Below are positions 1 to 64,000 of a DNA stretch of 64,000 nucleotides, one piece after another. Below the pieces are notes generated by a model. It saw nothing but the letters and a program-made list of their open reading frames with translations, made no database searches and was not told the origin of the DNA. Both the position numbers and the translations under genes were made by a program. Positions within the stretch are counted from its first letter, which is position 1. Every line of letters begins with the position of its first letter. The stretch lies in IMG/VR virus record IMGVR_UViG_3300008954_003475, positions 1-64,000 of that record, one strand, 5' to 3'.

Positions 1-1
1 C

Positions 2-760: not shown

Positions 761-779
761 ATCTGTTATTCCTTATTTG

Positions 780-3863: not shown

Positions 3864-3891
3864 CTAATAATTTCTCCTGAGTCAATCATTA

Positions 3892-12781: not shown

Positions 12782-12782
12782 A

Positions 12783-13976: not shown

Positions 13977-13977
13977 C

Positions 13978-18733: not shown

Positions 18734-19187
18734 CTTCGCTTACTTTGAAATTTATACTTGTTTTATTTAAAGGCTCAATATCAGCCCCTGATTCATCAGA
18801 TGAGGGTAAGGCATTTCCACCTGCAAAAAATACAGACAAATCATTATCTTCCTCTTCTGGTATATTGCTTAATAACGCCCCCGGTATAGACATACTGGAC
18901 TCATCATAAGATATGCTATTCATGGGGAAAGTGTCAGAAACAGAGTTGCCTCGCCTGCTTTCACCTGCCCTTTCAGAAGAGGAAGAGGCCGCCGCAAGCG
19001 GCATAGTCCTAGCGCTTTCTGACAGCAACAAACAAGCGACCTTTTCCTTAAATACCATAAACAGATTTCCATCCTGCTCAACAGTAAACCTATTATCCTC
19101 AAAAGATTTTACTTCGCCCGTTATTTGCCACCCACCATCTAAAAATAATGTAACAGTTTTTCCGACCAAACTTTCTTTACTATTCAT
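18717..19187 (-). CDS. Hfq/Sm-like fold protein with acidic disordered tail
   Basis: VTLFLDGGWQITGEVKSFED...MVFKEKV aligns by eye to the Hfq Sm1/Sm2 motifs (VSIYLVNGIKLQGQIESFD...MVYKHAI). Confidence 0.6.
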   Translation of the reverse strand: MNSKESLVGKTVTLFLDGGWQITGEVKSFEDNRFTVEQDGNLFMVFKEKVACLLLSESARTMPLAAASSSSERAGESRRGNSVSDTFPMNSISYDESSMSIPGALLSNIPEEEDNDLSVFFAGGNALPSSDESGADIEPLNKTSINFKVSEDDTKD

Positions 19188-21458: not shown

Positions 21459-22397
21459 TTACTTATCGCTACAGAATAAACTTTGACTGACTTCGCCAAG
21501 AAGCCCTGGCATGTCCATCCCTGCACAATCTATCTTTGTTCTTACAAAGTTATAATGATTAGAGAAGCCTTCAAAACTGCCATCTTCGCAGCCGCTATGC
21601 ACAGTGGTGCATAATGTGCCATCAGAATTTTGCGGATATTCTAATGGAATTCCAAGCCCTAAATGAACAGCTTTCCACAAAGCTTTTAGGGCTTCAATTT
21701 GGACAGGATAAAACCACATAAAAGGTTTTTGTGTTTTTCCATGCACCTGTCCATTCTCTTGCAATGGTCTTTCACCAAACCCATTTTCAACGTACCAGTC
21801 CTGGTACTTTGGATAATAAGCATTGCTTATCTCTATGCCAATACTTTTTTTATTTCCATGGTATTTGCTGCAATGCCACGCCCCATGTTGCGTATCTAAT
21901 AGTTGATATATTGTTCCATCATTGTCTAAACAAAAATGGACTGATATTCCCCTTCTATTCAATATATTTGCACATGTTTCTGCAGACAAACATACATCCC
22001 AATGATTAACAAACATAGAAGGCTCTCTATCTGGCTTTCCGGAGTTATCATAATACTTTCCAGGGGTTATAGCCAAACCATCCGGCTCGTCCCATAAAAC
22101 CACCTGGGGCCAATCAATTGGCAAAAACTTACCATTATGGACAATAAAATTACTTTCATTATTTAATGTAGATCTTTTCTTTGGTTTATAATTTGATATC
22201 TCGACTTGCCTTTCGGTCCATATCCTCCTATAGGTCATTGGACCGACAAGCCCATCTGCCGTTACCTTGTGGGCTCTTTGCCACTTTTTAACTTTGTTTA
22301 CCAAATCTTCATCAAAATGTTCAGCGCCAAACCAACTAGGGCTCCACCCCAACTTTAATGAGCTAGATTCATTATAGAAGTCTTTGTCCACAGCCAC
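21459..22397 (-). CDS. N-acetylmuramoyl-L-alanine amidase (Amidase_2) with N-terminal peptidoglycan-binding domain (endolysin-like)
   Basis: PG-binding VKKWQRAHKVTADGLVGPMT; amidase motifs VNHWD, VHFCLDNDGTIYQ, AWH, SIGIEI, NHYNF...KIDC; SD AGGAGG before GTG. Confidence 0.85.
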   Translation of the reverse strand: MAVDKDFYNESSSLKLGWSPSWFGAEHFDEDLVNKVKKWQRAHKVTADGLVGPMTYRRIWTERQVEISNYKPKKRSTLNNESNFIVHNGKFLPIDWPQVVLWDEPDGLAITPGKYYDNSGKPDREPSMFVNHWDVCLSAETCANILNRRGISVHFCLDNDGTIYQLLDTQHGAWHCSKYHGNKKSIGIEISNAYYPKYQDWYVENGFGERPLQENGQVHGKTQKPFMWFYPVQIEALKALWKAVHLGLGIPLEYPQNSDGTLCTTVHSGCEDGSFEGFSNHYNFVRTKIDCAGMDMPGLLGEVSQSLFCSDK

Positions 22398-24871
22398 TAC
22401 TTCCTCCTTCTCCTATCTATTATAGAAGCCCTACCACTTTTTGACCCCTTTTGAAGTCTATTAAAGCCAGACTTTTTCTTTCTGATCTTTCTATTAACTT
22501 CTTCAGAAACGGCATTAACCTTATCCTCTCCCAAGTCTAAAGTCATAGCAACATCTCTATTCTTTTCTTTTTGAGAAGCTATTACCGCTTGTTGCTGACT
22601 TTCCTTCTTTAAATTATCAATCCTATCCCTAGGAAGCCCAAGGCCGGCGAACCAACTATATATCTTAATTGAATCCGAATCAGAATCTACATTGTAAACG
22701 CCCTGATAAATAGGAGCTCCGTTTGTTTGCTCTGAAATCATATGAAAACAATAATTTATGTTTATAGCAGGCAGCTTCTCCAGCACTTCTTTGGATCCGG
22801 CAACTATAACTCCGCCAGCTCTTGTTTGCGTTAAGTCAAAACCAGAAGCAAGCATGTTGGAGTTTAGGCTGTCAATCACAGCCTCTGCTAGTGCCGTTTC
22901 TTCCATATAATCTTCAACCTCCATAACCCCATATATAGAACAATCTCCACAAGAAATAATCTTACCAAAGTCGCTTGGGTCTAAAGCTGTAAACCTGGAG
23001 GGCTTAGCCGTAAGGGTGTTGAAAATATGAAGAGGCTCTACAATTGCATTATTTGCAGCCTCCCAAAACTTAGATTGACTAAGGTTTGCATAAATCTGCT
23101 CAATTCTTGCATTATCAACAACAATTAAATTTGAAACAATATTATCTGCGGTAAGCCTTGCCAGCCTAGAGAGAGTCTCTATAGAATTCTTCTTAGATTG
23201 AGCATCCTCTGTAGCTTTCGGCAAAACATATATAACCCCGACCGGAGTGCCCGTTTCAAATAACATTGGAATCAATGTATCAACAGAGCTTGATCCAGTA
23301 CCTCCGCCACCAGAGACGGCCAAATATACCATATGATTTCCTTCAATTACTCGATCAAACAAGGGCTGCATCAAATCAACACTTTCTGCAAAAATTTCAC
23401 GACCTAAGTCCAAGTCCTTACCAGTGCCTCCAAGGCTTCCTTCTAACAAAAGCTTTTGGCTGCCTGGAACATCAATAAATTCAAGATCTTGAGCCGAAGT
23501 GTTAACCACAGCTACATCATATCCTTTTTGGTGAAATACCTCTGCCAGCCTAGACCCTGCTTGTCCAACGCCTATAATGGCCAGCTCTATACTGACACCT
23601 CTTGTGTTTACAACCACAGGCATATCTTCCTCCTTCTTCTTTTGCATTTTTTCACGCAACCTTTCAAGAACATCTTCTTCCTGTCCATCATCTTTGGCCT
23701 CAAGAAGGGGTTCTGTTAAATCCTCCAAAACTTGGTCCGCTTCACCCGCTCCAAAAGCAGCCATCAGCGCCTCATTGTCTTGGTCAATATTTTTTTGAGA
23801 TTTTTCTTTTCGTTTAATCTCAATTTCTTTTACTTCATTTTTACTCATTATAAAATCCTCATAATATCTATTAAGTTGCTCTAATATCTTTTTTCTATTT
23901 GTAGTCGCAAACGGAACATGTGTTTCATTTTTATTATACGAAATTACTTCACAAAGGTATTCGGAATGTTTATTCATAGGGTCTGCATCAACTGTGATTA
24001 TGTCACAGTTCATAGCTTTTGCCTCATAAAAGCTTAACCCAAGCCCCTCCCTGGTAGAGGGGGCGATAACACAGTGTGATTTATCATATAATTTTACTAT
24101 ATCCTCTCTCTTCAAAACATCATTTATTAGTATTATATTCTTACACTTTTTTGCTATATTAGACTCGTCCTCAGTTAATCTCCCGCTAACCAACAATGTG
24201 GCATCTGATTTGGACATTCTGGAAAAATCTGAAAACGCTTCTAACGTTTGAATTGTATTTTTCTGATTAAAACCTGAATTTACAGGCCCAGGATGATAAA
24301 ATGATAATTTTTCTAGATCACCCTTATTTGCCTTAGGGACAAATAAAGCTCTGTCTACATAATCCCAAGATACTTGTTTTTTATTTTTATATTTTCTAAA
24401 TATATTATAAGAAGTTTCCGTAAGACACCAAACTTGATCAAAAATACTATATGAATTACTTTGAACAAACCTTTTATTTATCCACTCAGGCATTGGTACG
24501 TCAATAATCTTTATTCCAGTTTTTGCCTTAATATTCGAAACCCACTGCCCCTTCATCATAAAAGTTTCAAAAGAAATAATTATATCAATATCATTATCCC
24601 TCACAAGCCTTAAAAGCTGCTTCTCTACAGTTTTTTCCTTTGATAGAACATGAAAAGAAACATCAGATAATAAACTTTCATCATATGGTTCAGGATAATG
24701 ACGCCTAAATGTGCCGCCAAGGGCCTCTTTCTTATATTTTGCTTTTGAAACATAAGAAACTTCATTATTCTCACTAAGAATATCCCCAAGAGACTTTGCC
24801 AAATACCAGAGTCCAGATTCAGAAAGATATGTTTTTATCAAAATCTTTTTATTCTTTATTTTATTTATCAT
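22397..24871 (-). CDS. Fusion protein: N-terminal GT-B (GT4-like) glycosyltransferase + C-terminal tubulin/FtsZ-family GTPase
   Basis: aa 1-340 PSTREGLGLSFYEA (E-x7-E); from ~aa 430 IIGVGQAGSRLA, VNTSAQDL, GGTGKD, SGGGGTGSS (tubulin signature), VVDN, T7-like LDPSDF; basic C-terminal tail. Single uninterrupted frame. Confidence 0.88.
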   Translation of the reverse strand: MINKIKNKKILIKTYLSESGLWYLAKSLGDILSENNEVSYVSKAKYKKEALGGTFRRHYPEPYDESLLSDVSFHVLSKEKTVEKQLLRLVRDNDIDIIISFETFMMKGQWVSNIKAKTGIKIIDVPMPEWINKRFVQSNSYSIFDQVWCLTETSYNIFRKYKNKKQVSWDYVDRALFVPKANKGDLEKLSFYHPGPVNSGFNQKNTIQTLEAFSDFSRMSKSDATLLVSGRLTEDESNIAKKCKNIILINDVLKREDIVKLYDKSHCVIAPSTREGLGLSFYEAKAMNCDIITVDADPMNKHSEYLCEVISYNKNETHVPFATTNRKKILEQLNRYYEDFIMSKNEVKEIEIKRKEKSQKNIDQDNEALMAAFGAGEADQVLEDLTEPLLEAKDDGQEEDVLERLREKMQKKKEEDMPVVVNTRGVSIELAIIGVGQAGSRLAEVFHQKGYDVAVVNTSAQDLEFIDVPGSQKLLLEGSLGGTGKDLDLGREIFAESVDLMQPLFDRVIEGNHMVYLAVSGGGGTGSSSVDTLIPMLFETGTPVGVIYVLPKATEDAQSKKNSIETLSRLARLTADNIVSNLIVVDNARIEQIYANLSQSKFWEAANNAIVEPLHIFNTLTAKPSRFTALDPSDFGKIISCGDCSIYGVMEVEDYMEETALAEAVIDSLNSNMLASGFDLTQTRAGGVIVAGSKEVLEKLPAININYCFHMISEQTNGAPIYQGVYNVDSDSDSIKIYSWFAGLGLPRDRIDNLKKESQQQAVIASQKEKNRDVAMTLDLGEDKVNAVSEEVNRKIRKKKSGFNRLQKGSKSGRASIIDRRRRK

Positions 24872-25577
24872 ATACTAGTTTGCCACCAAGCCTTTCTTTT
24901 GAGGCCTTTTTTATATCTTCTATATTTTGTTCGAGCTCCTTCTTTCGATCCTTCTGCTGAGTCAAAGAGCCTCCTCTTGGAATTACAGAATAATAATACA
25001 AAATTTGATGAATATATTCTATAGGATATTGCTCAGAAATCCTCAGCCACATGTCGTAGTCTTCTGCAATCCAAAGATCTTCATTAAAAAGACCAACGTC
25101 ATTTAAAACAGCTCTCTTAATTGTGGTAGATCCTGATGCTACAAAATTTTGAGTCATAAGAGCAGAATGGTCTATCCTTATAGGTCTTTTATAAAAAGGC
25201 TTTTTAAGACGAACTCTATTTAATAAAATTTGATAATTTCCACAAGTCATGCCTATATCTGGCCTTTCTTTAAACGCATCTATAGATAATTTTAACTTGT
25301 GCCTATTCATTATATCATCTGCATCCAAAAGACTGACAAGATCTCCGCTTGTTGCTCTAATGCCAACATTTCTTGACGCTCCAGGCCCAATGTTCTTTTC
25401 ATTTCTTATATATTTAACAGTAGGAAATCTCCTCAATAACTTTTTAACATCCTCTGTTGAATTATCATCAACAACTGTAACTGTATACTTTTTATATTCC
25501 TGAGAAAAGCAGCTTCTAATTGCTTGCGTAAGAAATTTTCCAGGATTATAGGCTGGAATGATAATGTCAACCAACAT
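24861..25577 (-). CDS. GT2 family glycosyltransferase
   Basis: IIIPAYN, VDDNST, GPGASRNVG, LDADD (DxD), EDYDMW. Confidence 0.9.
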   Translation of the reverse strand: MLVDIIIPAYNPGKFLTQAIRSCFSQEYKKYTVTVVDDNSTEDVKKLLRRFPTVKYIRNEKNIGPGASRNVGIRATSGDLVSLLDADDIMNRHKLKLSIDAFKERPDIGMTCGNYQILLNRVRLKKPFYKRPIRIDHSALMTQNFVASGSTTIKRAVLNDVGLFNEDLWIAEDYDMWLRISEQYPIEYIHQILYYYSVIPRGGSLTQQKDRKKELEQNIEDIKKASKERLGGKLVYDK

Positions 25578-26523
25578 CTTTCAAAATCCTTAAATACTGC
25601 TCTACAATCAACCTAGGATTAAAACTTTCAAGCATATACTGTCTAGCTCCTAAAGATAAATCTTTTCTTAATTCAGAATTTTCCATTATTTCCGATATTG
25701 CTTCACAATATGAGTCTACGTCTCTACTTATAATAATCCCTGTTCTATAATTCTCTCCATGCAGATAAACTTGTGGATGAGTAACAGAGGGGACTCCGGC
25801 AGACCACTGTTCCATAAGGGCGGTTCCTTTGGTCTCGCTCAAAGAAGTGCAAATATAAAGATAGGCCTTCTTCGCCTCTTCAATATGAGTTTTGTAGTTA
25901 TATGGTCTACCATCTCCCAAAAATAAGAACTCATATTGTTTTAAATTATTTTTTATTTTTTTAGCAAACTCAATATCTTTAACCATATGCCGCGAATTTC
26001 CTTTCCACAAAATGTACTTGCCATACCTATCTGGCGGAGACCACAAATCAACATCTGGGCCAACCATAAAGCTCTCAAGCTTGTCTATCGGCAGTGCGTG
26101 CTTATTGGATATAAGATATCTTAACCTATCATTAACAGTTAATATCTTTTGATATTCTATTTTCTTCAAAAAAGCCTTCTCTTGCTTATACTCTACTGTA
26201 TCAAGCAAGTTTGGACCTAAAATAACTGGCTTTTTATAAGTATTTGCAAGCTGAATTATTGTTAAAAACGTATTTACCAAGCCACTCCAGCAGTGGAATG
26301 CCTTGCACTCTCTTATATCATTTAATAAATCTGTTGCATGTCTTGTTGTTTTTAGTTGAACATTTGGAATGTCCGAAAAAGACTCCAAATGTGTATAAAT
26401 AGACAATTGTACTTTTGGCAAATATTTAGAAACAAATTTTGCAAAATTAAGCAAGTCCATACCAGGACCATTTACAATGCCATTAGATATACCTATATTG
26501 AATGCTAGTATAACAACTTTCAT
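25567..26523 (-). CDS. GT-B (GT4-like) glycosyltransferase
   Basis: TSLSETKGTALMEQWSAGVPSV (E-x7-E) and typical C-terminal helix. Confidence 0.8.
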   Translation of the reverse strand: MKVVILAFNIGISNGIVNGPGMDLLNFAKFVSKYLPKVQLSIYTHLESFSDIPNVQLKTTRHATDLLNDIRECKAFHCWSGLVNTFLTIIQLANTYKKPVILGPNLLDTVEYKQEKAFLKKIEYQKILTVNDRLRYLISNKHALPIDKLESFMVGPDVDLWSPPDRYGKYILWKGNSRHMVKDIEFAKKIKNNLKQYEFLFLGDGRPYNYKTHIEEAKKAYLYICTSLSETKGTALMEQWSAGVPSVTHPQVYLHGENYRTGIIISRDVDSYCEAISEIMENSELRKDLSLGARQYMLESFNPRLIVEQYLRILKDVG

Positions 26524-26578: not shown

Positions 26579-28063
26579 TTATACTTGTTCGTGCGGTGAT
26601 ACGGCTTCTTCTTCGATATTCTCTGCCGGTTCAGCCGCCGTCTTGGACCCCTTTATGTTTGTATCCCAATGGTAATACATCCTGCTCAAAAACTTCTTAT
26701 ATCTCTCTTGTTTTAGTCTTTCTAAAGTTTTTCCATAAATAGGTGTTTTTATAATCTTATCTACCGGCCTTACTTCTAATTGAGCCTTATAGTCGCCAGC
26801 CAAAAATGACATACTCAACATTTCATCAAAACTTATATTCGAAATATCTTCTGGACTCATGTCCTTTGTAGCTTCTTCTATTTGAAAAATAATCTGCTCA
26901 TAATGCGCCTTGCCCTCTTCTCTCGTTAGCAAGTAAAACCCTCTATCGTACGAATACATTTCGTTATAACTTGGTATTAATTTTACTTCACTTTCCGGAT
27001 CAAGCTCCATATTTATAAAAGAACTTTTAGCATACTGTGGAATATCATATATCTGCTGATAAGTTGGTGCAGGACCAGTGCCTGTTAATTCTGAAAATAA
27101 ATTATTATAATTAACCACAAGCAGTCTCTCAACATCTACATTTTCTCTTTTCGCTATAGACTTTAACGTATCTCCCTCTCTAGACAGAGATTGAGAATCT
27201 GCTCTGTTTGGAATCATAAGCTCAAGACCTTGGGGCAAAACTTTTGTTTTAATAGATCTATAAAGTGATTCAATAGCAGAGGTGTCTCCAGACAAAAGGC
27301 CGCTTAATGCATTCATAAATCTCTCCGGAGAAACACCCACGGATGGCTCTTGAATTATTGTATCCATATTTTGAGCAAGAAAACTTCGCGAATCAACCTG
27401 AAGCTTTCTGGCAATATCTTCAATAGATTCTCCGTTTGGATTAAGCACCTCATATCTTTCACCAACTCTGGCCGGCATTTTCATAACATCTTTGACGTGA
27501 ACCTCTTCATGTCTTAAGGTTTCTATAAAATAAGCTTTTACTGCCCTTGTAAATAATCCAAACTCCTTATTAAAATCTCCCATTATCTCAGGAAGCTTTG
27601 ACATATTATTGCCTATCTCTCTCATTGCCGCTTCTTGCAAACTAATATTTGGATTAAAACCAAGCACCACCACCTTTTCAGACTTATCTTTGTCCCAACC
27701 AGTTTGGCCTGGAGGAAGCCCGGGATTGTCTGAAAATAATATCATATATATTCCGGTTATATCCTTTCCGCTAACGTCCTGTCTTTGCCTAACTGTTTTT
27801 GCAGCCAAAGCATTTGCCACATCCTGCCCTACCGAAACCCTTCCAGTTATAATCCCAAGAACATCCAAGGGTGCAATTCCATGAGCCAACATTTTTGCCC
27901 CAATTTCTCCCAAAAGCTCTTCGACTATATCAACAATCTCTGCCCGATTAACCGGCAGAGGTCTGGACATGGCTAACTTTAGATTTTCAGCAACAAGTAT
28001 GGACTCAACCAGAAAGCCTTTGTTGGACAACCACTTTTGTAATTTTTCTATTTTGTTTATCAT
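26579..28063 (-). CDS. HExxH metallopeptidase-like protein with two LysM-like repeats
   Basis: ETLRHEEVH; NGESIEDIARKLQVDSRSFLAQN and EGDTLKSIAKRENVDVERLLVVN. Confidence 0.6.
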   Translation of the reverse strand: MINKIEKLQKWLSNKGFLVESILVAENLKLAMSRPLPVNRAEIVDIVEELLGEIGAKMLAHGIAPLDVLGIITGRVSVGQDVANALAAKTVRQRQDVSGKDITGIYMILFSDNPGLPPGQTGWDKDKSEKVVVLGFNPNISLQEAAMREIGNNMSKLPEIMGDFNKEFGLFTRAVKAYFIETLRHEEVHVKDVMKMPARVGERYEVLNPNGESIEDIARKLQVDSRSFLAQNMDTIIQEPSVGVSPERFMNALSGLLSGDTSAIESLYRSIKTKVLPQGLELMIPNRADSQSLSREGDTLKSIAKRENVDVERLLVVNYNNLFSELTGTGPAPTYQQIYDIPQYAKSSFINMELDPESEVKLIPSYNEMYSYDRGFYLLTREEGKAHYEQIIFQIEEATKDMSPEDISNISFDEMLSMSFLAGDYKAQLEVRPVDKIIKTPIYGKTLERLKQERYKKFLSRMYYHWDTNIKGSKTAAEPAENIEEEAVSPHEQV

Positions 28064-28101
28064 GACTATAATTACTCATATTGGACAAAATTAATAATAG
28101 A

Positions 28102-28476
28102 TCAGCGCCCATAGTCATCCTCTATCCTTATAACATCATCCAGCTGCTTTGTGCTTACCTCAAACAACTCAACATCTTCATCTTTTGCTATAAACCTATG
28201 AGTATAAAATGGTGGAATATGAAATGTCATTCCTTCCTTTAATATAATCGTTCGCCTAGAACCATCAAACCCCTCTGCGGCATGTCCTCCTGTTTCTAGG
28301 TATAGAATTCCAGATTTAACAAAAATAGTCTCCTCTTTTTCTTCATGATATTGAAAAGACAACCTGTGGCCTGCTTTGATAAACAATATTTTGCCCACAT
28401 AGCCATTTTCGCAAGAAGACTTTGCCCAAATTATCTCATGGCCCCAAGGCTTTTCTATTTTTTTACAATATTCCAT
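28102..28476 (-). CDS. Cupin protein (mannose-6-phosphate isomerase type II C-terminal-like)
   Basis: KPWGHE, RLSFQYHEEKEET, HIPPFYTHRF, EVST. Confidence 0.8.
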   Translation of the reverse strand: MEYCKKIEKPWGHEIIWAKSSCENGYVGKILFIKAGHRLSFQYHEEKEETIFVKSGILYLETGGHAAEGFDGSRRTIILKEGMTFHIPPFYTHRFIAKDEDVELFEVSTKQLDDVIRIEDDYGR

Positions 28477-28483
28477 TATATGT

Positions 28484-29368
28484 TTACAGGCCTAACTCTT
28501 TAATAACTTTTTTTGTTAATTCTGGATATATTTCTGATGATAAATCAAGCATTTCTTTATTCTTGAAAATATCTTTAAATTGTTTTGCACACATAAACCA
28601 CATCCATCTATTTAGAACATTCATCTCTTGGGCTTTACCATCTTTTGTCATAACATCAAAACTGCTTCCATACCCATTGCCAGGAACCTTGTTTAGCCCT
28701 CTGTCTGAAAACTTTAATCCTAAATTATTTATTATATTTTTACGATATTTTTTATCTTTAAACCATAAATTATAATTAATCAAAACTTTATCATTGCCTA
28801 AATAATTAGTTTTTCCAAGATACTCTTTGGCATATTCACTCCATCTTTTTACAGCACCTTTGTCGAACCATGAAATATCACTATTTTCATTAGTTTTATG
28901 TGAAAAAGAAAGATTTTTTTTACCAACCTCTTTTCTCAAAGTATTAGACCTATGAAAAAACCTAAGTCTGCTTGAAAACAAATTAAATGGATCTCTTAAT
29001 ATTAAAATTGTGTTTTCTTTTCTCGGAGGAACAATATACAATGTTTTTTTATATTTTGCTTTTATATTTTTTATATTTTCTATAGAAATATCTTCCATAT
29101 TATATATATACCAAGGAAAAATCTCAATCGGCTTTTTACCCTTTGCGTTATGCCATTCTCCCCTATCTTCAAAAGCCTTTTTTCCGCTAAAACATAATAT
29201 ATCATTATGAAAATAGACAGGCTCTTCAACCTGTTGTATAATCCAATTAATTATACCATGCTGCCCAGAACGCATCATTGCGCAAATTTCAAGTTGATTA
29301 TTGATTATTTTGCATTTCTTTTTATAGTTGTTAACCTTTGTAGCCATATTACATTCTTTTGTAACCAA
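28484..29368 (-). CDS. Sulfotransferase-like protein
   Basis: 5'-PSB-like MMRSGQH, 3'-PB-like LILRDPFNLFSS, INYN; probable start MATKV. Confidence 0.55.
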   Translation of the reverse strand: MVTKECNMATKVNNYKKKCKIINNQLEICAMMRSGQHGIINWIIQQVEEPVYFHNDILCFSGKKAFEDRGEWHNAKGKKPIEIFPWYIYNMEDISIENIKNIKAKYKKTLYIVPPRKENTILILRDPFNLFSSRLRFFHRSNTLRKEVGKKNLSFSHKTNENSDISWFDKGAVKRWSEYAKEYLGKTNYLGNDKVLINYNLWFKDKKYRKNIINNLGLKFSDRGLNKVPGNGYGSSFDVMTKDGKAQEMNVLNRWMWFMCAKQFKDIFKNKEMLDLSSEIYPELTKKVIKELGL

Positions 29369-30155
29369 AATAATCTAACTCTTTTTGATATTTAGATAAA
29401 ATATTATTTATACGTCTAATATCATTTGTTCCTAAATTTTTAATTTGATCTGGATTTAGATTCTTTATTGGCATTTCCTTTTTTCCATGCAAAGAGTGAT
29501 GACCAGAAAGCTTGCCTTCAAAGGAAAAGTCATTTAACTCTGGCAACAAAGTTGTTATCTTTGTTTTTACCATCTCTTGATTATCGCATAAATCTGAATA
29601 TTTAACCCATATAACATTATCTAAAATTTTTAAATTTCTCATTTGAAACTTCATTGATTCGCCCCAATGAGTTGCACAACGCTCGATTTTATAGCCCTGC
29701 CTTCGTCTGAGACCTTCAGATAGGGCATATGGATTCCTTACCATAACGATAAAATATGAATTTAGAAAATACTTTTGCAGCAACTCTGCTCTAATTACAT
29801 TTGGAGGTGATTTCTCCAATAAAATCATATTTTTTAAAGGCCTTCCGGCTGACCGCTCCCACGCTTTAAACCATTTTTGTTTAATTATTTTCCAATTATA
29901 ATTTTTATCGTTACTAATCAAATTAGGCTTTTCCGTCCAAAGCCCTAATACGCCGTAGTTTCTCGGATGAGGTATGGCCTTTCCGGCATGATTATGCCCC
30001 TCGGAAGAAGTGGCGTGCTTATTTGTCTTTGGCAGCGGCACTACTGATTTGCAGTTACTTAAATAATGATGCAATAACGTAGATCCGCCATTATTCATAC
30101 AAACAACAAAAAGATGCTTACAATCTTTCTTGCAATTCTCGTAAGTCATTTTCAT
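29349..30155 (-). CDS. Sulfotransferase family (Sulfotransfer_3-like) protein
   Basis: VCMNNGGSTLL (diverged PSB), EKSPPN, MVRNPY, VKYSDL. Confidence 0.65.
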   Translation of the reverse strand: MKMTYENCKKDCKHLFVVCMNNGGSTLLHHYLSNCKSVVPLPKTNKHATSSEGHNHAGKAIPHPRNYGVLGLWTEKPNLISNDKNYNWKIIKQKWFKAWERSAGRPLKNMILLEKSPPNVIRAELLQKYFLNSYFIVMVRNPYALSEGLRRRQGYKIERCATHWGESMKFQMRNLKILDNVIWVKYSDLCDNQEMVKTKITTLLPELNDFSFEGKLSGHHSLHGKKEMPIKNLNPDQIKNLGTNDIRRINNILSKYQKELDYFGYKRM

Positions 30156-31143
30156 ACATTTCCTTTAAAAGCATTTTCCAACTATACTCAGGCTTCCACC
30201 CAAGATCTCTCATAATCTTAGAAGGATTTCCCAATAAGAATGGAACTTCAGATGGTCTCATAAATCTTTCATCAACTTCATAAACATCTTCAAAATTCAA
30301 TTCAGCAAGAGAGCAAGCGTATCTGAACATCTCCTCTATTGTCGCTCCTGTTCCGGTCGCTACAACATAATCACTTGGAAACTCTTGCTGCAGCATTAAA
30401 TACATTGCTTTACAATAGTCCTTCGAATGCCCCTCATCTCTAAACGGAGACAAATTCCCCATTTGCAAAGAATCTTGCAGACCAAGCTTAACGGAGGCTA
30501 CACCTCTAGTGATTTTTCTTGTTGCAAAATCAACGCCCCTCCTAGGACTGCTGTGATTATGTAAAATTCCATTGCAGGCAAATAGATTATATGCTGTACG
30601 ATAATTTCTAACTGCCCAATATGCAGCTAACTTAGCAATGGCATATGGAGATCTAGGATTGAATGTAGAACTTTCATCATATCCCTCCTTTGGACAACCT
30701 ACTCCGCCAAAAAGCTCAGACGTTGACGCCTGATAAAACCTTGTATATGGCGAAATCTGTCTAATTGATTCAAGCTGACCTATAACCGCTCTTGCGTCAA
30801 TATCAAATGTCGAAAGAGGCTCCTTAAAGGACTGGCCCACATGAGACATTGCCGCCAAATTATACCACTCATGCGGCCTATAGGAGTGAAGAACTCTGGA
30901 CACAAGGGTTGTATCACATATATCTCCTTCAATTAATTTAAAATTTTCTAAATCAATCAAATGACTTATGTTTCCATATTTCCTATTGGCGCTAAGCCTT
31001 CTGGTTATTCCAACTACAGAGTATTCTTTGTTTAATAATAACTCTGCTAAATATGAACCATCCTGGCCGGCAACGCCTGTTATAACAGCTGTTAACATAA
31101 TATCTCCTAACCATATTTTACTTATATAGTATACTTTTTCCAA
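30118..31143 (-). CDS. gmd: GDP-mannose 4,6-dehydratase (likely true start ATG 31098)
   Basis: ITGVAGQDGSYLAELL, YNLAAMSHVGQSF, FYQASTSELFG, PRSPYAIAK, GILHNHSSPRRG, FATRKIT; SD AGGAG before 31098. Confidence 0.95.
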   Translation of the reverse strand: MEKVYYISKIWLGDIMLTAVITGVAGQDGSYLAELLLNKEYSVVGITRRLSANRKYGNISHLIDLENFKLIEGDICDTTLVSRVLHSYRPHEWYNLAAMSHVGQSFKEPLSTFDIDARAVIGQLESIRQISPYTRFYQASTSELFGGVGCPKEGYDESSTFNPRSPYAIAKLAAYWAVRNYRTAYNLFACNGILHNHSSPRRGVDFATRKITRGVASVKLGLQDSLQMGNLSPFRDEGHSKDYCKAMYLMLQQEFPSDYVVATGTGATIEEMFRYACSLAELNFEDVYEVDERFMRPSEVPFLLGNPSKIMRDLGWKPEYSWKMLLKEMYENDLRELQERL

Positions 31144-31152
31144 TTTGCATAA

Positions 31153-31782
31153 TTATTTCTTAACTATATTTTCACCAAACTTATATCCAAAATAATCTAT
31201 ATCTTTTTTATACCTTCTAGCAACAATCCTCCTAAGATCATCATCATAATAAAAAGTATAATCTTTTCTTTCTTTTAAATACGAATGTTCTTCAAGCCTA
31301 TGATTCCAATCATTTTCAAGAACAGTATTTGCACCCAACATGTTTGCAACATCTTTCCATTGCTCATTCAATGTTTCATATCTAATTATATAATCCATAA
31401 CTATTTTATTATTTATACTTATAGCATTTAATTGCGGAACAGCATTTGCTTTCACAGAGTTCCTCCATACCGGGTTTTCCCTCCATCTTGTCAGCCAGGT
31501 CTTAAAGTCAACAGTCTTTCCATCCTTATGAAACCAGGGAAAAAAATAATTTGAAACGACAAGGTCCCATGGATTTCTGACAATTGAAAATTTTAAATAT
31601 TCATCCCAACGTTCTTTTCCAAACTTTTCTTTGGCCTCTTTTGCCACAATATGCTTCGGACCGATAGCCGAACTCCACTTAATCTTTTCATTCAGGCCGT
31701 AGTCAAGAAGCGCTTTCTCTACTGACGTACCCCCTGTTCGCTCAATATGAATAAAAATACACTTATATTTATCAGAAATCAT
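31153..31782 (-). CDS. Sulfotransferase family 2-like protein
   Basis: FIHIERTGGTSV, FSIVRNPWDLVVSNY, IIRYETL, VARRYKKDIDYFGY. Confidence 0.75.
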   Translation of the reverse strand: MISDKYKCIFIHIERTGGTSVEKALLDYGLNEKIKWSSAIGPKHIVAKEAKEKFGKERWDEYLKFSIVRNPWDLVVSNYFFPWFHKDGKTVDFKTWLTRWRENPVWRNSVKANAVPQLNAISINNKIVMDYIIRYETLNEQWKDVANMLGANTVLENDWNHRLEEHSYLKERKDYTFYYDDDLRRIVARRYKKDIDYFGYKFGENIVKK

Positions 31783-32717
31783 TTATCTTCTTTCAAATGC
31801 CATCGAACCGTATTTTCGAGACCCTCTTCAAAAGGGGTTTTTATGCTATAATCTAAAATATTTTTTATCTTCGTTATATCTGCTTGAGACTTATCAACGT
31901 CTCCCTGTCTTTTGTCTTCATATCTTGGCGGCAATGTGCCTACTATCTTGGCAAGATTATTTATTGCAATCTTCTGCCCGCACCCAACATTAAAAGATTC
32001 TCCATTTAATTTCTTATTATAATTTGCAGCCAAAATATTTGCAGAAACAACATTTTCAACAAAGCAAAAATCTCTGGTTTGCTCCCCATCACCGTATATG
32101 GTAGGGGCTGTGTTGTTTTTCAGATTATCACAAAAGGCCGAGATAACCGCCGCATAAGCAGAATCTGCACGCTGTCTTGGTCCAAAAACATTAAAATATC
32201 TTAAACAAACCGTGTCGAGATCATAAGCCTCGGAAAACATCTTGCAATATTCTTCTCCAATTTTTTTCTGCAGAGCGTAAGGCGACCTTGGGTTAAGAAG
32301 CACGCTCTCTGGGGTCGGCAAAATATCAGATCCTCCATATACAGAAGAAGATGAGGAAAAAATAACTCTTTTACATTTATACTTTTGAGCAATATTTAAT
32401 ATATTTACTGTACCATTAACATTTATATCATTTGATATAACAGGCTCTTTTATAGACGGAACAACGCCAGAGATTGCCGCCAGATGAAACACTGCGTCGG
32501 GTCTATGCTCGCGAAAAACCGTATCAATCTTTTCTGACCTTATATCATAATATTTTGGAATAAAATTATCATAAGAAATATGCAAATCCATTGTAGATTG
32601 CAAGCCTGAGCGCATATTGTCAATGCCAACAACTTTGCAGCCCTCTTTTAAAAGACCCTCTGTTAAGTGCCCTCCTATAAAGCCTGCAGACCCTGTGACA
32701 ATTGCCGTCTTTATCAT
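31779..32717 (-). CDS. NAD-dependent nucleotide-sugar epimerase (WbpP/GalE-like SDR)
   Basis: TGSAGFIGG, SSSSVYG, SPYALQK (YxxxK), LRYFNVFGPRQ, IYGDGEQTRDF. Confidence 0.9.
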   Translation of the reverse strand: MIKTAIVTGSAGFIGGHLTEGLLKEGCKVVGIDNMRSGLQSTMDLHISYDNFIPKYYDIRSEKIDTVFREHRPDAVFHLAAISGVVPSIKEPVISNDINVNGTVNILNIAQKYKCKRVIFSSSSSVYGGSDILPTPESVLLNPRSPYALQKKIGEEYCKMFSEAYDLDTVCLRYFNVFGPRQRADSAYAAVISAFCDNLKNNTAPTIYGDGEQTRDFCFVENVVSANILAANYNKKLNGESFNVGCGQKIAINNLAKIVGTLPPRYEDKRQGDVDKSQADITKIKNILDYSIKTPFEEGLENTVRWHLKEDK

Positions 32718-33502
32718 TCTTCGTCCCTAATCTTGTTTCTCTCAAGAATAGATGCGTTTAAAACCGCATTAAGAGAATTGCTTTTTTTCATCATATTATT
32801 TAATGCATTTGTATCTTTTGGAAAACATGCTCCGCCATAAGCCAACCTGCCATCAGGGCCTGGCACGGCTACGTGATGAGGGGCAATCCAACCATTTTTT
32901 AACATTAACGCTTTAATATTCTCAAAACTTAATCCGTTTGATTCACATAACAAATAAAACTCATTAAATATCATAACTTTTTGAGCATAAAAAGAATTTG
33001 CAAACAACTTCATAGCTTCAGATTCATCAGATGTGCAAATAGATATTAATGCATCCGGATAAAGCCTTTTGTACAATAAAACCAAAGAGTCAAAAGCCGA
33101 AGAGTCTTCCGTCTTTCCAAGAACTATGTGTTTTTGATTATGAAAGTCCCGAAAAGCTGTGCGCTCTGTCAAAAATTCTGGATTATGAGCAATGTTAAGA
33201 TTATACTTTTCAGCGAATCTTTTTGTCACCCCAGGCTCAACCGTGGACTTGATAACGCATAATCCATTATAATTTAATTCGCTTAACTTTTCAAGACTCT
33301 CACTTATAGCGCTCAAATCAAAACCAGAACTATCTACATAAGGAGTTGGAAGGCATAAAAAAACAATACCAGAGTCTAAAACGTCTTTGATATTACCTAT
33401 TTTTTGAAACTTATCGTAAACAATGGTCTCTATTCCTTTTTCTTTAAAGGATCTATGTAACGCCCTTCCAACGAACCCTTTTCCTATCTGAGATATGCGC
33501 AT
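32714..33502 (-). CDS. UDP-glucose/GDP-mannose dehydrogenase family protein lacking the C-terminal domain
   Basis: GKGFVG, CLPTP, IKSTVEPG, HNPEFLTE, KLFANSF, YGGACFPKD; only 262 aa. Confidence 0.85.
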   Translation of the reverse strand: MRISQIGKGFVGRALHRSFKEKGIETIVYDKFQKIGNIKDVLDSGIVFLCLPTPYVDSSGFDLSAISESLEKLSELNYNGLCVIKSTVEPGVTKRFAEKYNLNIAHNPEFLTERTAFRDFHNQKHIVLGKTEDSSAFDSLVLLYKRLYPDALISICTSDESEAMKLFANSFYAQKVMIFNEFYLLCESNGLSFENIKALMLKNGWIAPHHVAVPGPDGRLAYGGACFPKDTNALNNMMKKSNSLNAVLNASILERNKIRDEE

Positions 33503-33518
33503 AACCTTCTAAGCATCC

Positions 33519-34694
33519 TTATATTAAATCAAAATTTTTCAACATTTCAACCTCAGAAACAGACATGGGAGAAACATTCTTTTCTATATTCTCTAATATT
33601 TTATTTTTAAATCTTTTTGGCAAATTCATCTCTTCCTCATAAGCTTGAGAATAATATCCGTATTCAAAAGAAACATCAACATTAGGATACATATTTGTTA
33701 CAGTAGAAATTTTACGCTTTTGCGCTATAGCCACCATCGAAGCTCCCATTTTTAACGGCTTTTTATTAATGATTTTTTTAACAATCGGAGAAACTGTAAT
33801 TCTTCCACCATGATAAGCATTTTTTCTAAAGCACTTATAACACATACCGCAAGAACCCTTTTCTCGCCTCAAACAAGATTCGGCCGGAATAGAGTTATTC
33901 TTACAAATAATTGTTGTAACTACCTCCGAACATGCGCCGACCGCCCAAAACATAGGCAATCCGGCGGCTTTAAACAGCCTCTTGTGATAATTATAATACC
34001 AAGAATTGGCAAAATCACGATACTTGTGTCCTTTCCACAAATATGTACTATCTAAAATTTGGCCAGTTGTTACATGTGAAAGCCCTAAATGGTCGGCTAA
34101 CAAAATGGCTGGCAAACATACAACATAATCAGTTAAAAACCCAGACATTAAAGGCTTCCCGTCTTTCTTTAGTTTTGATCTTAATAATTCAATATTAGTT
34201 TCTATAGAAAATCCTTTATAGCCACGCTCTTTAAACCACTCTAAGCATCTAAGCTGATTTCCATGCTTTAACTTAGTCTTAAATCCATCTCTTTTCAAAT
34301 AACATAATACAACATCATCTTTTTGCATCAATATTGCTGCCGCAGCAGAATCAACACCTCCAGAAAAAGCTAATCCCACCTTACCATCCTCAATAGGCTT
34401 TCGTTCTATCCAGTTTATTGCCTTAAACAATTCATCTCCACTTTCTGTGATAAATGGAAGAAAAATTAAACTTTCAGCCAAACGCAATAAACTATCCGAA
34501 ACCTCATCAAGCCTCCAGTCTTTTGGCATCTTAAAATAATATGTACCATAAAAAGAGGTCAAATAAAGATGACGACCCTTTTGCGACCATTGTATGTTTA
34601 AATCATTAAATTTCATTTTTTTATTATCCAATTCTGTTTTAAAATAATATGTTGCATAATCTTGGTGAATTATAGATTTGGTTTCTTCTTTCAT
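33519..34694 (-). CDS. PP-loop (adenine nucleotide alpha-hydrolase) ATPase-like protein
   Basis: GLAFSGGVDS PP-loop and a C-terminal Cys cluster (ESCL...CGMCYKC). Confidence 0.6.
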   Translation of the reverse strand: MKEETKSIIHQDYATYYFKTELDNKKMKFNDLNIQWSQKGRHLYLTSFYGTYYFKMPKDWRLDEVSDSLLRLAESLIFLPFITESGDELFKAINWIERKPIEDGKVGLAFSGGVDSAAAAILMQKDDVVLCYLKRDGFKTKLKHGNQLRCLEWFKERGYKGFSIETNIELLRSKLKKDGKPLMSGFLTDYVVCLPAILLADHLGLSHVTTGQILDSTYLWKGHKYRDFANSWYYNYHKRLFKAAGLPMFWAVGACSEVVTTIICKNNSIPAESCLRREKGSCGMCYKCFRKNAYHGGRITVSPIVKKIINKKPLKMGASMVAIAQKRKISTVTNMYPNVDVSFEYGYYSQAYEEEMNLPKRFKNKILENIEKNVSPMSVSEVEMLKNFDLI

Positions 34695-35644
34695 TTTACC
34701 TCTATAAAACTTTTTTTATTAAACCCTTTTACCATAATTTTGCCATTCAAACCAAATGGCATCCTCATAGTTCTGTAATCAAAAAATAAATTTTTTGATT
34801 TTTTATGATATTTTCTAAAAGAATTTGCATACTCGTTCCTCGCAACGCTTCCCCCTCCAAGGTCGGAGCTTCTGGTGAGTGAATTTTTTACATATAAGGC
34901 CCTATAGGTTGCATGGCAAAAAACCCCAATATTATTTGAACCATAATATTTTGCCATACGGTGTCTAAACTCTGTATCTGCACCGCATCTAACCATATGA
35001 TAATACCCTATATCATTTAAAGTCTTTTTTCTATCAAAAAACATAGATGCCTCACAAATCTTTGGCCCAGAAGCCTTCCTGCCAGATGTTGCATATCGAT
35101 TATGCAAAGACAACACAGCGGAAAGATTTTTTGCTTTATAACAAGATATCAATGCTAAAATATGATCTTTATGAATTATATCATCAGCGTCTAAAAAAGT
35201 AGCATACTTTCCTTTTGCAATATCTAATGCATAATTTCTACATGCATATGGTCCATAATTTTTTTTATTTAAAATAATTCTAACTCTATTATCAATTATT
35301 TGCTTTAATATTTTTTCCACATTATCGCTTGATTTATCGTCAATTACTATAATTTCTATATTTTTATATGACTGCCCCAAAGCAGATCGAACAGCTCTTG
35401 CAAGCAATTTGTTTTTATTATAATTTGTAATAATTATAGTAACCATATCATTTAAAGCATTTGCACCAATATTTGGCACAGAAGTAAATATGGTATATTT
35501 ATTTATAGTTTTTAAAATCTTTTTTTTATTTGCATTACCTTTAATTATTAAAAAACCTTTTTCCATAGAAACAGAAATAGGTTTTTTAATATTTTTATTC
35601 GAAACCCTGTATCCCTTCGGCCTTGTTCTTCTAAATCTGGACAT
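34691..35644 (-). CDS. GT2 family glycosyltransferase
   Basis: IIITNYN, IDDKSSD, GPYACRNYAL, FLDADD, GADTEF. Confidence 0.88.
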   Translation of the reverse strand: MSRFRRTRPKGYRVSNKNIKKPISVSMEKGFLIIKGNANKKKILKTINKYTIFTSVPNIGANALNDMVTIIITNYNKNKLLARAVRSALGQSYKNIEIIVIDDKSSDNVEKILKQIIDNRVRIILNKKNYGPYACRNYALDIAKGKYATFLDADDIIHKDHILALISCYKAKNLSAVLSLHNRYATSGRKASGPKICEASMFFDRKKTLNDIGYYHMVRCGADTEFRHRMAKYYGSNNIGVFCHATYRALYVKNSLTRSSDLGGGSVARNEYANSFRKYHKKSKNLFFDYRTMRMPFGLNGKIMVKGFNKKSFIEVK

Positions 35645-35703
35645 ATTTTAATATTTTTTATTGCTCTTATTCTAAATTATATTTATTAAATAATATAAAG
35701 AAC

Positions 35704-36381
35704 TCATGACTTACTTCTGTCTATAAGATCTTTTTTCAAGCCAAGAGTGCTGCCATCATAAGCTTTTTTGTTAATTTGAGTTTTTTTCTTTAAATATTTT
35801 TTTCTAAGATATTCATTAAATCTTTTTGCAGACTTATCATTAGAAAACTTTCTTAATTTCTGAGTATATTCAAAATACTTTTTAAACGCCACCCCTGGGC
35901 TTGGGGCTGAATCATGATCTCCCAAAACCTTTTTTATTTCTATATTTTTATAACCCAATTTAGCAGCTCGCTTTGCATAATCACGATCTCCTCCCAAAAC
36001 GTCTCTAAATTCTAACTTTTGCAGCGGCTCTACACTCCATAGCTTTAAGGATCCAATTTTGCTTTTTAAAAATAAATCATACAAAAGAGATGAAGCATTT
36101 AATATTTTTATCCTCTGTCTTTTTTTATTATTTGCAAACTTTAATAACTCATCTAAAGCGTTTGGATAAAGATACATATCCTCATCTATTTGAAAGCACC
36201 ACTTGTAACCAGCGGAGGCTAACCTCATCTCGTTTAACCACTCTGATTGAGGCTTCTTGTCTCTAATGACCACAACGCTATCTACACGCCGATCTTTTTC
36301 TGCAATTTTATCAACAAGCTTTTTACACTTCGGAAAAGTTGAAGATCCAATTGTTCCTATACATATAATAACATTATTCAC
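35704..36381 (-). CDS. GT-A (GT2-like) glycosyltransferase
   Basis: FQIDEDMYL (DxD), GGDRDY; embedded in the GT cluster. Confidence 0.55.
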   Translation of the reverse strand: MNNVIICIGTIGSSTFPKCKKLVDKIAEKDRRVDSVVVIRDKKPQSEWLNEMRLASAGYKWCFQIDEDMYLYPNALDELLKFANNKKRQRIKILNASSLLYDLFLKSKIGSLKLWSVEPLQKLEFRDVLGGDRDYAKRAAKLGYKNIEIKKVLGDHDSAPSPGVAFKKYFEYTQKLRKFSNDKSAKRFNEYLRKKYLKKKTQINKKAYDGSTLGLKKDLIDRSKS

Positions 36382-46618: not shown

Positions 46619-46675
46619 TAAACATCTCCTACCTTTAACCTATATCGATACATCCAAGATTATTAATAGAGCTTA

Positions 46676-62579: not shown

Positions 62580-62582
62580 ACT

Positions 62583-63998: not shown

Positions 63999-64000
63999 CT

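Follow-up and report, generated by a model that had tools for sequence, protein, structure and literature searches.

A 64,000-nt stretch of DNA (positions 1 to 64,000 of IMG/VR record IMGVR_UViG_3300008954_003475, hereafter the window) was found to carry a single uninterrupted open reading frame (ORF) of 824 aa, with a glycosyltransferase (GT) domain in its N-terminal half and a tubulin/FtsZ GTPase domain in its C-terminal half. The ORF is flanked by a block of glycan genes on its upstream side and by an endolysin gene on its downstream side, and overlaps both of its immediate neighbors. The features of this locus are summarized in Table 1. Other genes of the window encode baseplate wedge, tail fiber, PhoH, RNR, sigma factor, UvsW and DnaB proteins, as expected for a tailed phage, and the window matched IMG/VR contigs of about 223 kb at 100% (complete 223-kb contig, IMGVR_UViG_3300007513_000004). 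Thus, the DNA is that of a jumbo tailed phage.

Table 1. Features of the GT-tubulin locus (all on the minus strand).
Position	Residues	Feature	Observations
22397..24871	aa 1-824	Whole GT-tubulin ORF, 824 aa plus stop	Predicted mass 92.5 kDa
23849..24871	aa 1-341	GT4 retaining GT-B glycosyltransferase domain (predicted)	Pfam Glycos_transf_1; AF2 pLDDT 90.8, pTM 0.88
24023..24049	E275-E283	EX7E catalytic motif	E275, G276, G278 and E283 invariant in 48 fusions and in 16 fused or split GTs
23856..23860		Internal Shine-Dalgarno-like GAGGA	7 nt upstream of the Met342 codon
23846..23848	Met342	ATG; start codon of the stand-alone tubulin in split relatives and likely internal start here	Product of 53.0 kDa predicted
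23753..23797	aa 359-373	Conserved helix 1 of the tubulin N-terminal extension (ENxxLMxAF motif)	N366, L369, A372 and F373 conserved; AF2 helix with pLDDT 77-89
23678..23752	aa 374-398	Variable acidic tether, mostly disordered (predicted)	pLDDT below 50 for aa 376-397; 36% acidic; length varies among homologs
23627..23677	aa 399-415	Conserved amphipathic helix 2 of the N-terminal extension (DVLxxLxxKM)	L402 and L405 invariant, K408 nearly so; also conserved in stand-alone and class-3 tubulins; AF2 helix
22544..23596	aa 426-776	TubZ-like tubulin/FtsZ core, including the long C-terminal helix (aa 748-776)	Pfam Tubulin; AF2 core pLDDT above 90
23549..23572	aa 434-441	T1 loop GVGQAGSR	Invariant
23291..23314	aa 520-527	T4 tubulin signature SGGGGTGS	Invariant or nearly invariant
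22967..22984	aa 630-635	T7 loop LDPSDF	D631 and D634 align with the two T7 aspartates of M. jannaschii FtsZ; invariant
22400..22543	aa 777-824	Conserved basic C-terminal tail (RKIxKKKSGFxxLQ...SIIDRRR), a likely partner-binding peptide	Contains invariant residues; motif kept in class-3 relatives; net charge +10
24861..26523		Two GTs directly upstream (GT2 at 24861-25577, GT1 at 25567-26523)	Form a conserved three-GT block with the fused GT
26579..42057		Rest of the glycan gene block	LysM protein, cupin/isomerase, two sulfotransferases, GDP-mannose dehydratase, epimerase, UDP-glucose dehydrogenase and six more GT-like genes
21459..22397		Endolysin (PG_binding_1 + Amidase_2) directly downstream	Start overlaps the stop of the fusion

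Domain architecture and predicted folds of the two halves

We first examined whether the two halves of the ORF are members of the families suggested by their motifs. Pfam Glycos_transf_1 was detected at aa 201-339 (45.0 bits, cut-off 26.4) and Pfam Tubulin (PF00091) at aa 430-594 (46.6 bits, cut-off 33). In an alignment of 48 full-length homologs, the EX7E motif of the GT and the T1 and T7 loops of the tubulin were invariant, the T4 signature was invariant or nearly so, and the basic tail was conserved. K204-N205-T206 and H193 of the GT were likewise invariant. A preliminary description of this DNA, which had reported one uninterrupted frame joining a GT-B glycosyltransferase, a charged linker and a tubulin/FtsZ GTPase with a basic tail, was therefore confirmed in what it observed. 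One refinement is that the charged segment is not a new linker but the N-terminal extension of the tubulin itself, with two conserved helices around an acidic stretch predicted to be disordered, and that this extension is also present in stand-alone relatives.

Sequence and structure comparisons placed the tubulin half closest to plasmid TubZ proteins. A sequence search of the PDB returned TubZ/RepX (4ei7) at E 2.6e-15, and a Foldseek search with the predicted model returned TubZ at E 1.7e-24 with TM 0.75-0.78, including TubZ filament entries. The two-domain tubulin fold (GTPase domain, core helix and activation domain) was supported by a Foldseek probability of 1.00 to TubZ, CetZ and FtsZ, with TM 0.72-0.82. 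Pfam TubZ-like_C (PF22453) was not listed for the window protein at E <= 1, but is precomputed for many close homologs and was found in distant relatives. For the GT half, a sequence search of the PDB gave no hit; by contrast, a Foldseek search with the confident GT-B model matched the GT4 enzymes BshA, MshA and PimA/PimB' and a chlorovirus GT (NY2A, 3oy2) at E about 1e-12, with 12-17% identity. Taken together, these results reveal a GT-B glycosyltransferase fused to a tubulin/FtsZ-family GTPase, with both folds known from confident models.

Recurrence of the fusion and its split counterparts

We next asked whether the fusion is restricted to a single assembly. Two IMG/VR contigs from different samples matched the gene at 100%. 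The fusion was detected in more than 70 protein clusters at 51-93% identity, on contigs up to 348 kb, and in 35 distinct fused junction sequences from other metagenomes. Thus, of the outcomes that could have overturned the preliminary description, none was observed: there was no stop at the junction in independent assemblies, the fusion was not a one-off stop loss, and the C-terminal half modeled as a tubulin.

In sister lineages the same two genes were found to be split, with the GT immediately upstream and overlapping the tubulin ATG by 8-32 nt in different frames. This arrangement is typical of co-expressed partners and makes the locus a Rosetta-stone case. Fused and split states interleaved on the tree, with at least 7-11 changes of state (also put at 9-11 at minimum), and an AU test rejected a single fused clade (delta lnL 671, p about 6e-27). 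The fused state was the majority (84 of 137 rows in this comparison). Split junctions were of at least five different architectures, one of which differed from a fused junction by a single T in a T-run. Programmed +1 slippage on the T5 run of some split junctions was considered as a way to make some fusion protein, but this remains speculation.

Conservation of a putative internal ribosome-binding site and start codon

The fused junctions were then analyzed for the start signals of the stand-alone tubulin. The junction Met was assigned by alignment and by a DNA-level rule, as a simple pattern search selected an upstream Met in about 14 proteins. By this approach, all 35 of 35 distinct fused junctions were found to have the ATG (Met342 in the window) and, 4-8 nt upstream, a GAGGA-type Shine-Dalgarno (SD) core of at least 4 nt, with 32 of 35 having a core of at least 5 nt. 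By contrast, the corresponding rates for 622 other in-frame ATGs in the same ORFs were 12.9% and 6.9%, although these statistics treat related sequences as independent. The synonymous wobble base that makes the SD was G in 32 of 32 Glu/Lys codons, against a background of about 47%, while the neighboring Asp codon varied between GAT and GAC. The residue before the Met varied and the residue after it was mostly Ser or Ala. Prediction of mRNA structure around the internal start was uninformative (-4.5 kcal/mol, z = -0.07). These results suggest that the gene probably makes both a 92.5-kDa GT-tubulin and a 53-kDa free tubulin, although internal initiation is inferred from sequence alone.

Distant relatives and genomic context

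More distant relatives (class 3; 39-46% identity, contigs up to 480 kb) were found to lack this GT but to keep the tubulin between sugar-nucleotide/GT genes and an endolysin. No divergent orthologous GT was found upstream of the class-3 tubulins by tblastn or by a profile built from 16 GTs, whereas the profile recovered all 23 class-1 and class-2 loci; the upstream genes in class 3 are instead a GT2 and NAD-dependent epimerases/dehydratases. A peptidoglycan hydrolase directly follows the tubulin both in the marine clade (amidase) and in the class-3 locus scanned (GH25), and in the loci examined the hydrolase is followed by UvsW. Overlapping GT-tubulin adjacency is kept throughout the marine clade. 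The wider family is large, with 1,615 representatives at E <= 1e-3 and 163 at E <= 1e-30 among 1.84 billion cluster representatives. Other long tubulin relatives were examined as possible GT fusions, and this was ruled out for the ten scanned (795-983 aa): nine carry inteins in the GTPase domain and the tenth is a tubulin-PilM/FtsA fusion.

Comparison with known systems

Phage tubulins are known as stand-alone proteins, in which PhuZ centers a phage nucleus and TubZ segregates DNA. The window protein shares with TubZ of Bacillus plasmids (pBtoxis TubZ; TubZ/RepX, PDB 4ei7, 2xka, 3j4s) and of Clostridium phage c-st (type III TubZRC partition) the closest similarity in sequence and fold, as well as a long C-terminal helix followed by a flexible basic tail. 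Identity to TubZ is, however, only about 19-20%, and the protein differs in its N-terminal extension of about 85 aa, in its fusion to (or overlap with) a GT and in its location in a lytic-type jumbo-phage backbone between glycan genes and an endolysin. Classical TubZ works with TubR and a centromere. No TubR-like gene was found adjacent to the ORF, where the overlapping neighbors (GT2 and amidase) leave no intergenic space, and no tandem or direct repeat arrays that could represent tubC iterons were detected. Thus, assignment to a TubZRC-type partition system was rejected.

PhuZ of the PhiKZ-like nucleus-forming phages (Chimalliviridae) is also a jumbo-phage tubulin-family GTPase, and its filaments position cargo in the infected cell (PMC13282480). 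The relationship to PhuZ was found to be remote (PHROG PhuZ E 5.8e-6; BFVD PhuZ E about 1e-13, 14-17% identity, TM 0.62-0.68), well behind that to TubZ. The tail of PhuZ is acidic, whereas that of the window protein is basic. A sigma-factor gene but no multisubunit RNAP or shell gene was seen in the window, which covers only 64 kb of about 223 kb. When 50,697 deposited phage genomes were searched by tblastn, the only hit was gp138 of Bacillus phage G ('xxxxx', putative FtsZ-like protein), at 25% identity over aa 429-759. This gene is stand-alone (about 376 aa) and lies in a nucleotide-metabolism neighborhood with no GT, and thus gives no cultured model.

The GT resembles GT4 retaining enzymes in its predicted GT-B fold, EX7E motif and Pfam match, but is covalently joined to a cytoskeletal protein. 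A functional analogy, and no more than that, may be drawn to septal peptidoglycan synthesis, in which treadmilling FtsZ filaments distribute glycan-building enzymes; there the link is non-covalent and through adaptor proteins, whereas here the enzyme is on the same polypeptide. Literature searches revealed no published description of a GT-tubulin fusion, and only automated JGI names list both domains.

Discussion

We favor, with no more than even confidence, the view that this is a genuine bifunctional gene of a marine jumbo phage that is maintained by selection. In this view, the fusion arose more than once, when a 1-nt frame change merged two overlapping, translationally coupled genes: a GT4 retaining glycosyltransferase, which would be the last enzyme of the phage's glycan gene block, and a TubZ-like tubulin. 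Both halves keep their catalytic residues. The 92.5-kDa GT-tubulin and the 53-kDa free tubulin most likely made from the gene are proposed to co-assemble into GTP-dependent filaments, in which a fraction of the subunits would display the GT on a flexible tether of about 85 residues and concentrate the final glycosylation step along or at the end of a cytomotive filament. The conserved basic tail would bind an as yet unidentified partner. The identities of the domains, the recurrence of the fusion, the repeated switching between fused and split states and the conservation of the internal start signals are demonstrated by our analysis. By contrast, internal initiation, GTP-dependent polymerization, sugar-nucleotide-dependent (retaining) GT activity and the scaffold role are inferred from sequence and predicted structure. 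Thus, the preliminary description is only partly supported in its interpretation: the fusion of a GT-B enzyme to a phage tubulin held and no published precedent was found in our literature searches, but its suggestion that a filament positions the enzyme at virion-assembly sites or at the host envelope or septum remains an inference, and the repeated interconversion with split forms, the retained internal start and the TubZ-like rather than PhuZ-like nature of the tubulin change the picture that it gave.

The repeated reversion to the split state shows that covalent linkage is not essential, and this pattern would also fit a near-neutral fusion of two independent functions, an alternative that we regard as possible but less likely. 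The GT would then work only in the glycan pathway and the tubulin only in positioning phage DNA or particles, as TubZ and PhuZ do, with 1-nt indels at the overlapping stop and start fusing or separating the two genes at random. The variety of split junctions, the single-T difference between a split and a fused junction, the tether predicted to be disordered and the conserved internal SD and ATG, from which free tubulin is presumably still produced, are consistent with a fusion that is harmless rather than useful, as is the absence of this GT from the class-3 tubulins, which indicates that the core function of the tubulin does not need the enzyme. No adaptor or cargo for the filament was identified in our analysis. 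On the other hand, the fused state predominates and persists through deep divergence, down to 51% identity, GT-tubulin adjacency is kept throughout the marine clade, and the wider family keeps the tubulin next to glycan genes in every locus examined.

A module directed at the cell envelope is considered unlikely. Here the tubulin would act in an FtsZ-like way at the inner face of the membrane, tethered by a membrane-peripheral GT, and the filament would organize where a cell-surface glycan is built or where the adjacent endolysin acts. The peptidoglycan hydrolase that follows the tubulin, the LysM protein in the cluster, the membrane-associated PimA and PimB' among the structural neighbors of the GT and the precedent of FtsZ-guided peptidoglycan synthesis are in agreement with this possibility. 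However, no flippase, polymerase, ABC exporter or initiating phosphoglycosyl transferase domain was found in the cluster, no membrane-targeting sequence was identified, the protein is nearer to TubZ than to FtsZ, and conserved gene order in a phage backbone need not reflect function. That the long frame is an assembly or sequencing artifact or a decaying pseudogene is effectively refuted by the two contigs from different samples that match the gene at 100%, the 35 distinct junctions in independent metagenomes and the invariant catalytic motifs in both halves, although the junction is A/T-rich with short homopolymers.

A published survey of marine jumbo phages reported tubulin as unique to the PhiKZ-like group (PMC9123017), which suggests that the family revealed here has been overlooked. 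In this family a TubZ-like tubulin is repeatedly fused to, or translationally coupled with, a GT in an abundant marine jumbo-phage lineage that, on present evidence, is not PhiKZ-like, and in every locus examined the tubulin sits between glycan-synthesis genes and an endolysin. The natural fused and split pairs thus provide a Rosetta stone for a cytoskeleton-enzyme partnership, and the retained internal start would offer a simple way to set the enzyme-to-filament ratio. A further reading, which is tentative but not excluded, is that a cytomotive tubulin filament serves as a moving scaffold, on which a tethered GT completes a virus-encoded, possibly sulfated, glycan on virion or envelope targets at defined places in the infected cell, with the ratio of enzyme-bearing to bare subunits set by internal translation initiation. 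If so, this would be the first tubulin-family polymer known to carry a metabolic enzyme covalently, and would assign a function to a large, unstudied TubZ-like family in jumbo phages that are not PhiKZ-like.

The fusion gene and its genomic context

We first examined whether the open reading frame was intact and what domains it was predicted to encode. A single uninterrupted ORF of 824 aa was found on the minus strand, with matches above the Pfam cut-offs to Glycos_transf_1 in its N-terminal half and to Tubulin in its C-terminal half. Comparison to PHROGs returned a phage glycosyltransferase (GT) family and, weakly, PhuZ, and comparison to NCBIfam returned a sub-threshold match to FtsZ. All of the motifs named in the preliminary description (E-x7-E, a GQAG T1 loop, a GGGGTGSS signature, an LDPSD T7-like loop and a basic tail) are present. 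The sequence is not an assembly accident, as two IMG/VR contigs from different samples (223,402 and 221,878 bp) matched the gene at 100% and a 93%-identical homologue of 824 aa was also found. Thus, the observation of a GT-tubulin/FtsZ fusion in a phage was confirmed.

All large ORFs of the window but one lie on the minus strand. These include a baseplate wedge, a tail fibre, PhoH, ribonucleotide reductase, a sigma factor, DnaB and its loader, a UvsW-type helicase, an endolysin with PG_binding_1 and Amidase_2 domains, and a PrkA-like AAA protein kinase, a DUF444 (YeaH-like) protein and a SpoVR-like protein encoded in a row, a trio that is conserved in all related loci that reach that far. This is a jumbo tailed phage. 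A 156-aa ORF between the helicase loader and a conserved 199-aa ORF displayed only a weak, sub-threshold Hfq-like match (23.1 bits against a 27-bit cut-off), and this gene is conserved in relatives. The G+C content was 0.45-0.48 at both ends of the window compared to 0.30-0.41 elsewhere, with the left end corresponding to the tail-fibre gene.

The fusion gene is the last gene of a glycan block of about 20 kb that also holds nine further GT-like genes, two sulfotransferases, GDP-mannose dehydratase, an epimerase, UDP-glucose dehydrogenase, a cupin/isomerase and a LysM protein. The presence of the two sulfotransferase genes suggests a sulfated glycan. No flippase, polymerase, exporter or initiating phosphoglycosyl transferase domain was found in the block, which leans towards a cytoplasmic acceptor but does not prove one. 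Two giant ORFs (1,533 and 3,319 aa) lie between the baseplate genes and the glycan block, the larger of which has a Laminin_G_3/ConA-like lectin domain near its C-terminus. These could be fibre or adhesin proteins and candidate targets of glycosylation.

Coordinates of the features examined (window positions unless stated; residues are those of the 824-aa ORF)
Feature	Nucleotides	Strand	Residues	Remark
GT-tubulin ORF	22397-24871	minus	1-824	
Pfam Glycos_transf_1			201-339	45.0 bits (cut-off 26.4)
Pfam Tubulin			430-594	46.6 bits (cut-off 33)
NCBIfam FtsZ			425-700	sub-threshold
Conserved helix			359-373	ENxxLMxAF
Variable acidic stretch			376-397	pLDDT below 50
Second conserved helix			399-415	amphipathic
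Internal ATG	23846-23848		Met342	in frame
Shine-Dalgarno-like GAGGA	23856-23860			
Glycan block	22.4-42 kb			
Sulfotransferase genes	29349-30155 and 31153-31782	minus		
PrkA-like, DUF444 and SpoVR-like genes	11399-15897	minus		
Two giant ORFs	42017-56635	minus		
ORF with weak Hfq-like match	18717-19187	minus		156 aa
Tail-fibre gene	780-3863			
Ends of higher G+C content	1-4000 and 62001-64000			
UvsW-type helicase of L003 (L003 positions)	12341-14878			845 aa, with intein

Predicted structure of the two halves

We next compared each half of the fusion to proteins of solved and predicted structure. By sequence, the best solved relative of the tubulin half was a Bacillus TubZ/RepX (4ei7, E 2.6e-15), with FtsZ proteins behind it at about 1e-9. 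An AlphaFold2 model of aa 342-824 had a mean pLDDT of 82.3 with a core above 90, and a Foldseek search with this model ranked TubZ first (E 1.7e-24, TM 0.75-0.78, including TubZ filament entries) followed by CetZ and FtsZ. Against predicted viral structures, PhuZ proteins were remote (E about 1e-13, 14-17% identity), and the only close match was an uncultured-phage 'FtsZ' at 41% identity. The T1, T4 and T7 loops were invariant in 48 homologues, and D631 and D634 aligned with the two T7 aspartates of archaeal FtsZ; a polymerization-activated GTPase is therefore expected. By contrast to the tubulin half, the GT half had no sequence-level hit in the PDB. It was modeled with confidence (pLDDT 90.8, pTM 0.88) as a GT-B fold nearest to the GT4 enzymes BshA, MshA, PimA/B' and a chlorovirus GT, and its EX7E, K204-N205-T206 and H193 residues were found to be invariant.

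The region between the two domains had been described initially as a charged linker. Residues 342-425 are not an invented linker, however, but consist of two conserved helices separated by a variable acidic stretch, and both helices are also conserved in stand-alone relatives. The basic C-terminal tail (net charge +10) carries a family-wide motif, suggesting a conserved binding partner.

Recurrence and history of the fusion

To examine whether the fusion recurs, a set of 5.8 billion proteins was searched. By this approach, more than 70 clusters of full-length fusions were returned at 51-93% identity, on contigs up to 348 kb, together with many stand-alone tubulins of about 455-480 aa at 60-75% identity that cover approximately aa 350-824. 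Loci retrieved by context look-ups and two contig scans were classified by tblastn into three classes: fused (class 1); split (class 2), in which the orthologous GT lies immediately upstream in another frame and overlaps the tubulin ATG by 8-32 nt; and a broad set at 39-46% identity (class 3), on contigs up to 480 kb, with no orthologous GT within 6 kb.

On a tubulin-domain tree, classes 1 and 2 formed one clade (SH-aLRT 100), within which the two states interleave and need 9-11 changes at minimum. An AU test rejected the best tree that holds all fused genes together (delta lnL 671, p 6e-27). Split junctions were also found to have at least five different architectures, one of which differs from a fused junction by a single T in a T-run. 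Thus, fusion and fission have happened repeatedly. Several split junctions (loci L021, L137 and L153) read GAGGATTTTT-ATG (T5), while a fused one (L010) reads GAGGATTTT-ATG (T4); it may be speculated that a +1 slip on the T-run would put ribosomes into the tubulin frame.

Other insertions and fusions were detected among the relatives. Nine distant tubulin relatives of 795-983 aa are interrupted by an intein with a LAGLIDADG homing endonuclease, inserted in the GTPase domain and, in most of them, near the T4 GGGTGS loop. A TubZ-like tubulin of 818 aa (aa 7-361, with TubZ-like_C) is fused to a C-terminal PilM/FtsA actin-like domain (aa 516-791), a tubulin-actin fusion on one polypeptide. In addition, the UvsW-type helicase of L003, a split-gene relative, carries an intein (Hom_end_hint, LAGLIDADG) and is 845 aa, compared to 510 aa in the window.

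The gene junction retains signals for a probable internal start

In split genes, the tubulin ATG lies inside the last codons of the GT and is preceded by GAGGA or AAGGA. In the window, the same ATG is in frame as Met342 and is preceded by GAGGA. Across 35 distinct fused junctions the codon was always ATG, and a Shine-Dalgarno (SD) core of at least 4 nt was present in 35 of 35 and of at least 5 nt in 32 of 35, compared to rates of 12.9% and 6.9%, respectively, for 622 other in-frame ATGs in the same ORFs. The wobble base that creates the core was G in 32 of 32 Glu/Lys codons, against a background of about 47%, while the next codon varied between GAT and GAC. The residue before the Met varied widely, and the residue after it was mostly Ser or Ala. 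These sequences are related, and the counts thus overstate independence; even so, they span about 50% protein divergence. The simplest reading, which is an inference, is that the internal start is still used to give a 53.0-kDa tubulin beside the 92.5-kDa fusion.

Synteny and comparison to known tubulins

In every class, the tubulin was found to lie downstream of sugar-nucleotide or GT genes and upstream of UvsW, the loader, DnaB and PrkA. In the class-3 loci scanned, the immediate upstream genes are NAD-dependent epimerases/dehydratases, with a GT2 further upstream in one; in that locus, a GH25 lysozyme lies between the tubulin and UvsW. In the marine clade, an amidase follows the tubulin in many, but not all, loci. 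This arrangement may be conserved backbone order rather than a functional link.

The protein belongs to the tubulin/FtsZ superfamily and resembles TubZ most, yet it lacks the adjacent TubR and centromere that define TubZRC. It is not a PhuZ. The only cultured-phage relative, phage G gp138, is 25% identical and sits among nucleotide-metabolism genes. The literature that could be searched describes phage tubulins only as PhuZ or TubZ, and one marine survey states that tubulin is unique to the PhiKZ-like cluster (PMC9123017). None of these papers mentions a GT fusion, although automated JGI names do list both domains.

Interpretation

The preliminary interpretation is partly supported: the protein is a GT fused to a tubulin/FtsZ-family GTPase in a phage, but the idea that a polymerizing filament could position a glycosylation enzyme at virion-assembly sites or at the host envelope or septum remains an inference. 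That the fusion is real is nearly certain, and its recurrence and repeated switching with the split state were established by the analysis, as were the predicted domain identities and the conserved start signals at the junction. By contrast, use of the internal start, polymerization, GT activity and any scaffolding role are inferred. We consider it likely that both domains are competent and somewhat more likely than not that internal initiation is used, while the proposal that the filament scaffolds glycosylation remains tentative.

An artefact is excluded. The main alternative is instead a near-neutral fusion of two neighbours with independent jobs, which is favored by the repeated switching between fused and split states and by the class-3 relatives that lack the GT. 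An envelope-directed, FtsZ-like role tied to the adjacent endolysin is a further possibility.

The fusion is of interest because it is widespread, conserved and directly testable. The mechanism we propose is a filament-forming TubZ-like GTPase in which a fraction of subunits would carry an active GT4 enzyme on a flexible tether of about 85 residues, co-polymerized with bare subunits made from the internal start. N-terminal cargo on long linkers is reportedly tolerated by related filaments when mixed with untagged subunits, as for GFP-tagged PhuZ and FtsZ. In this model, the last step of the phage's glycan pathway would be concentrated on a cytomotive filament.
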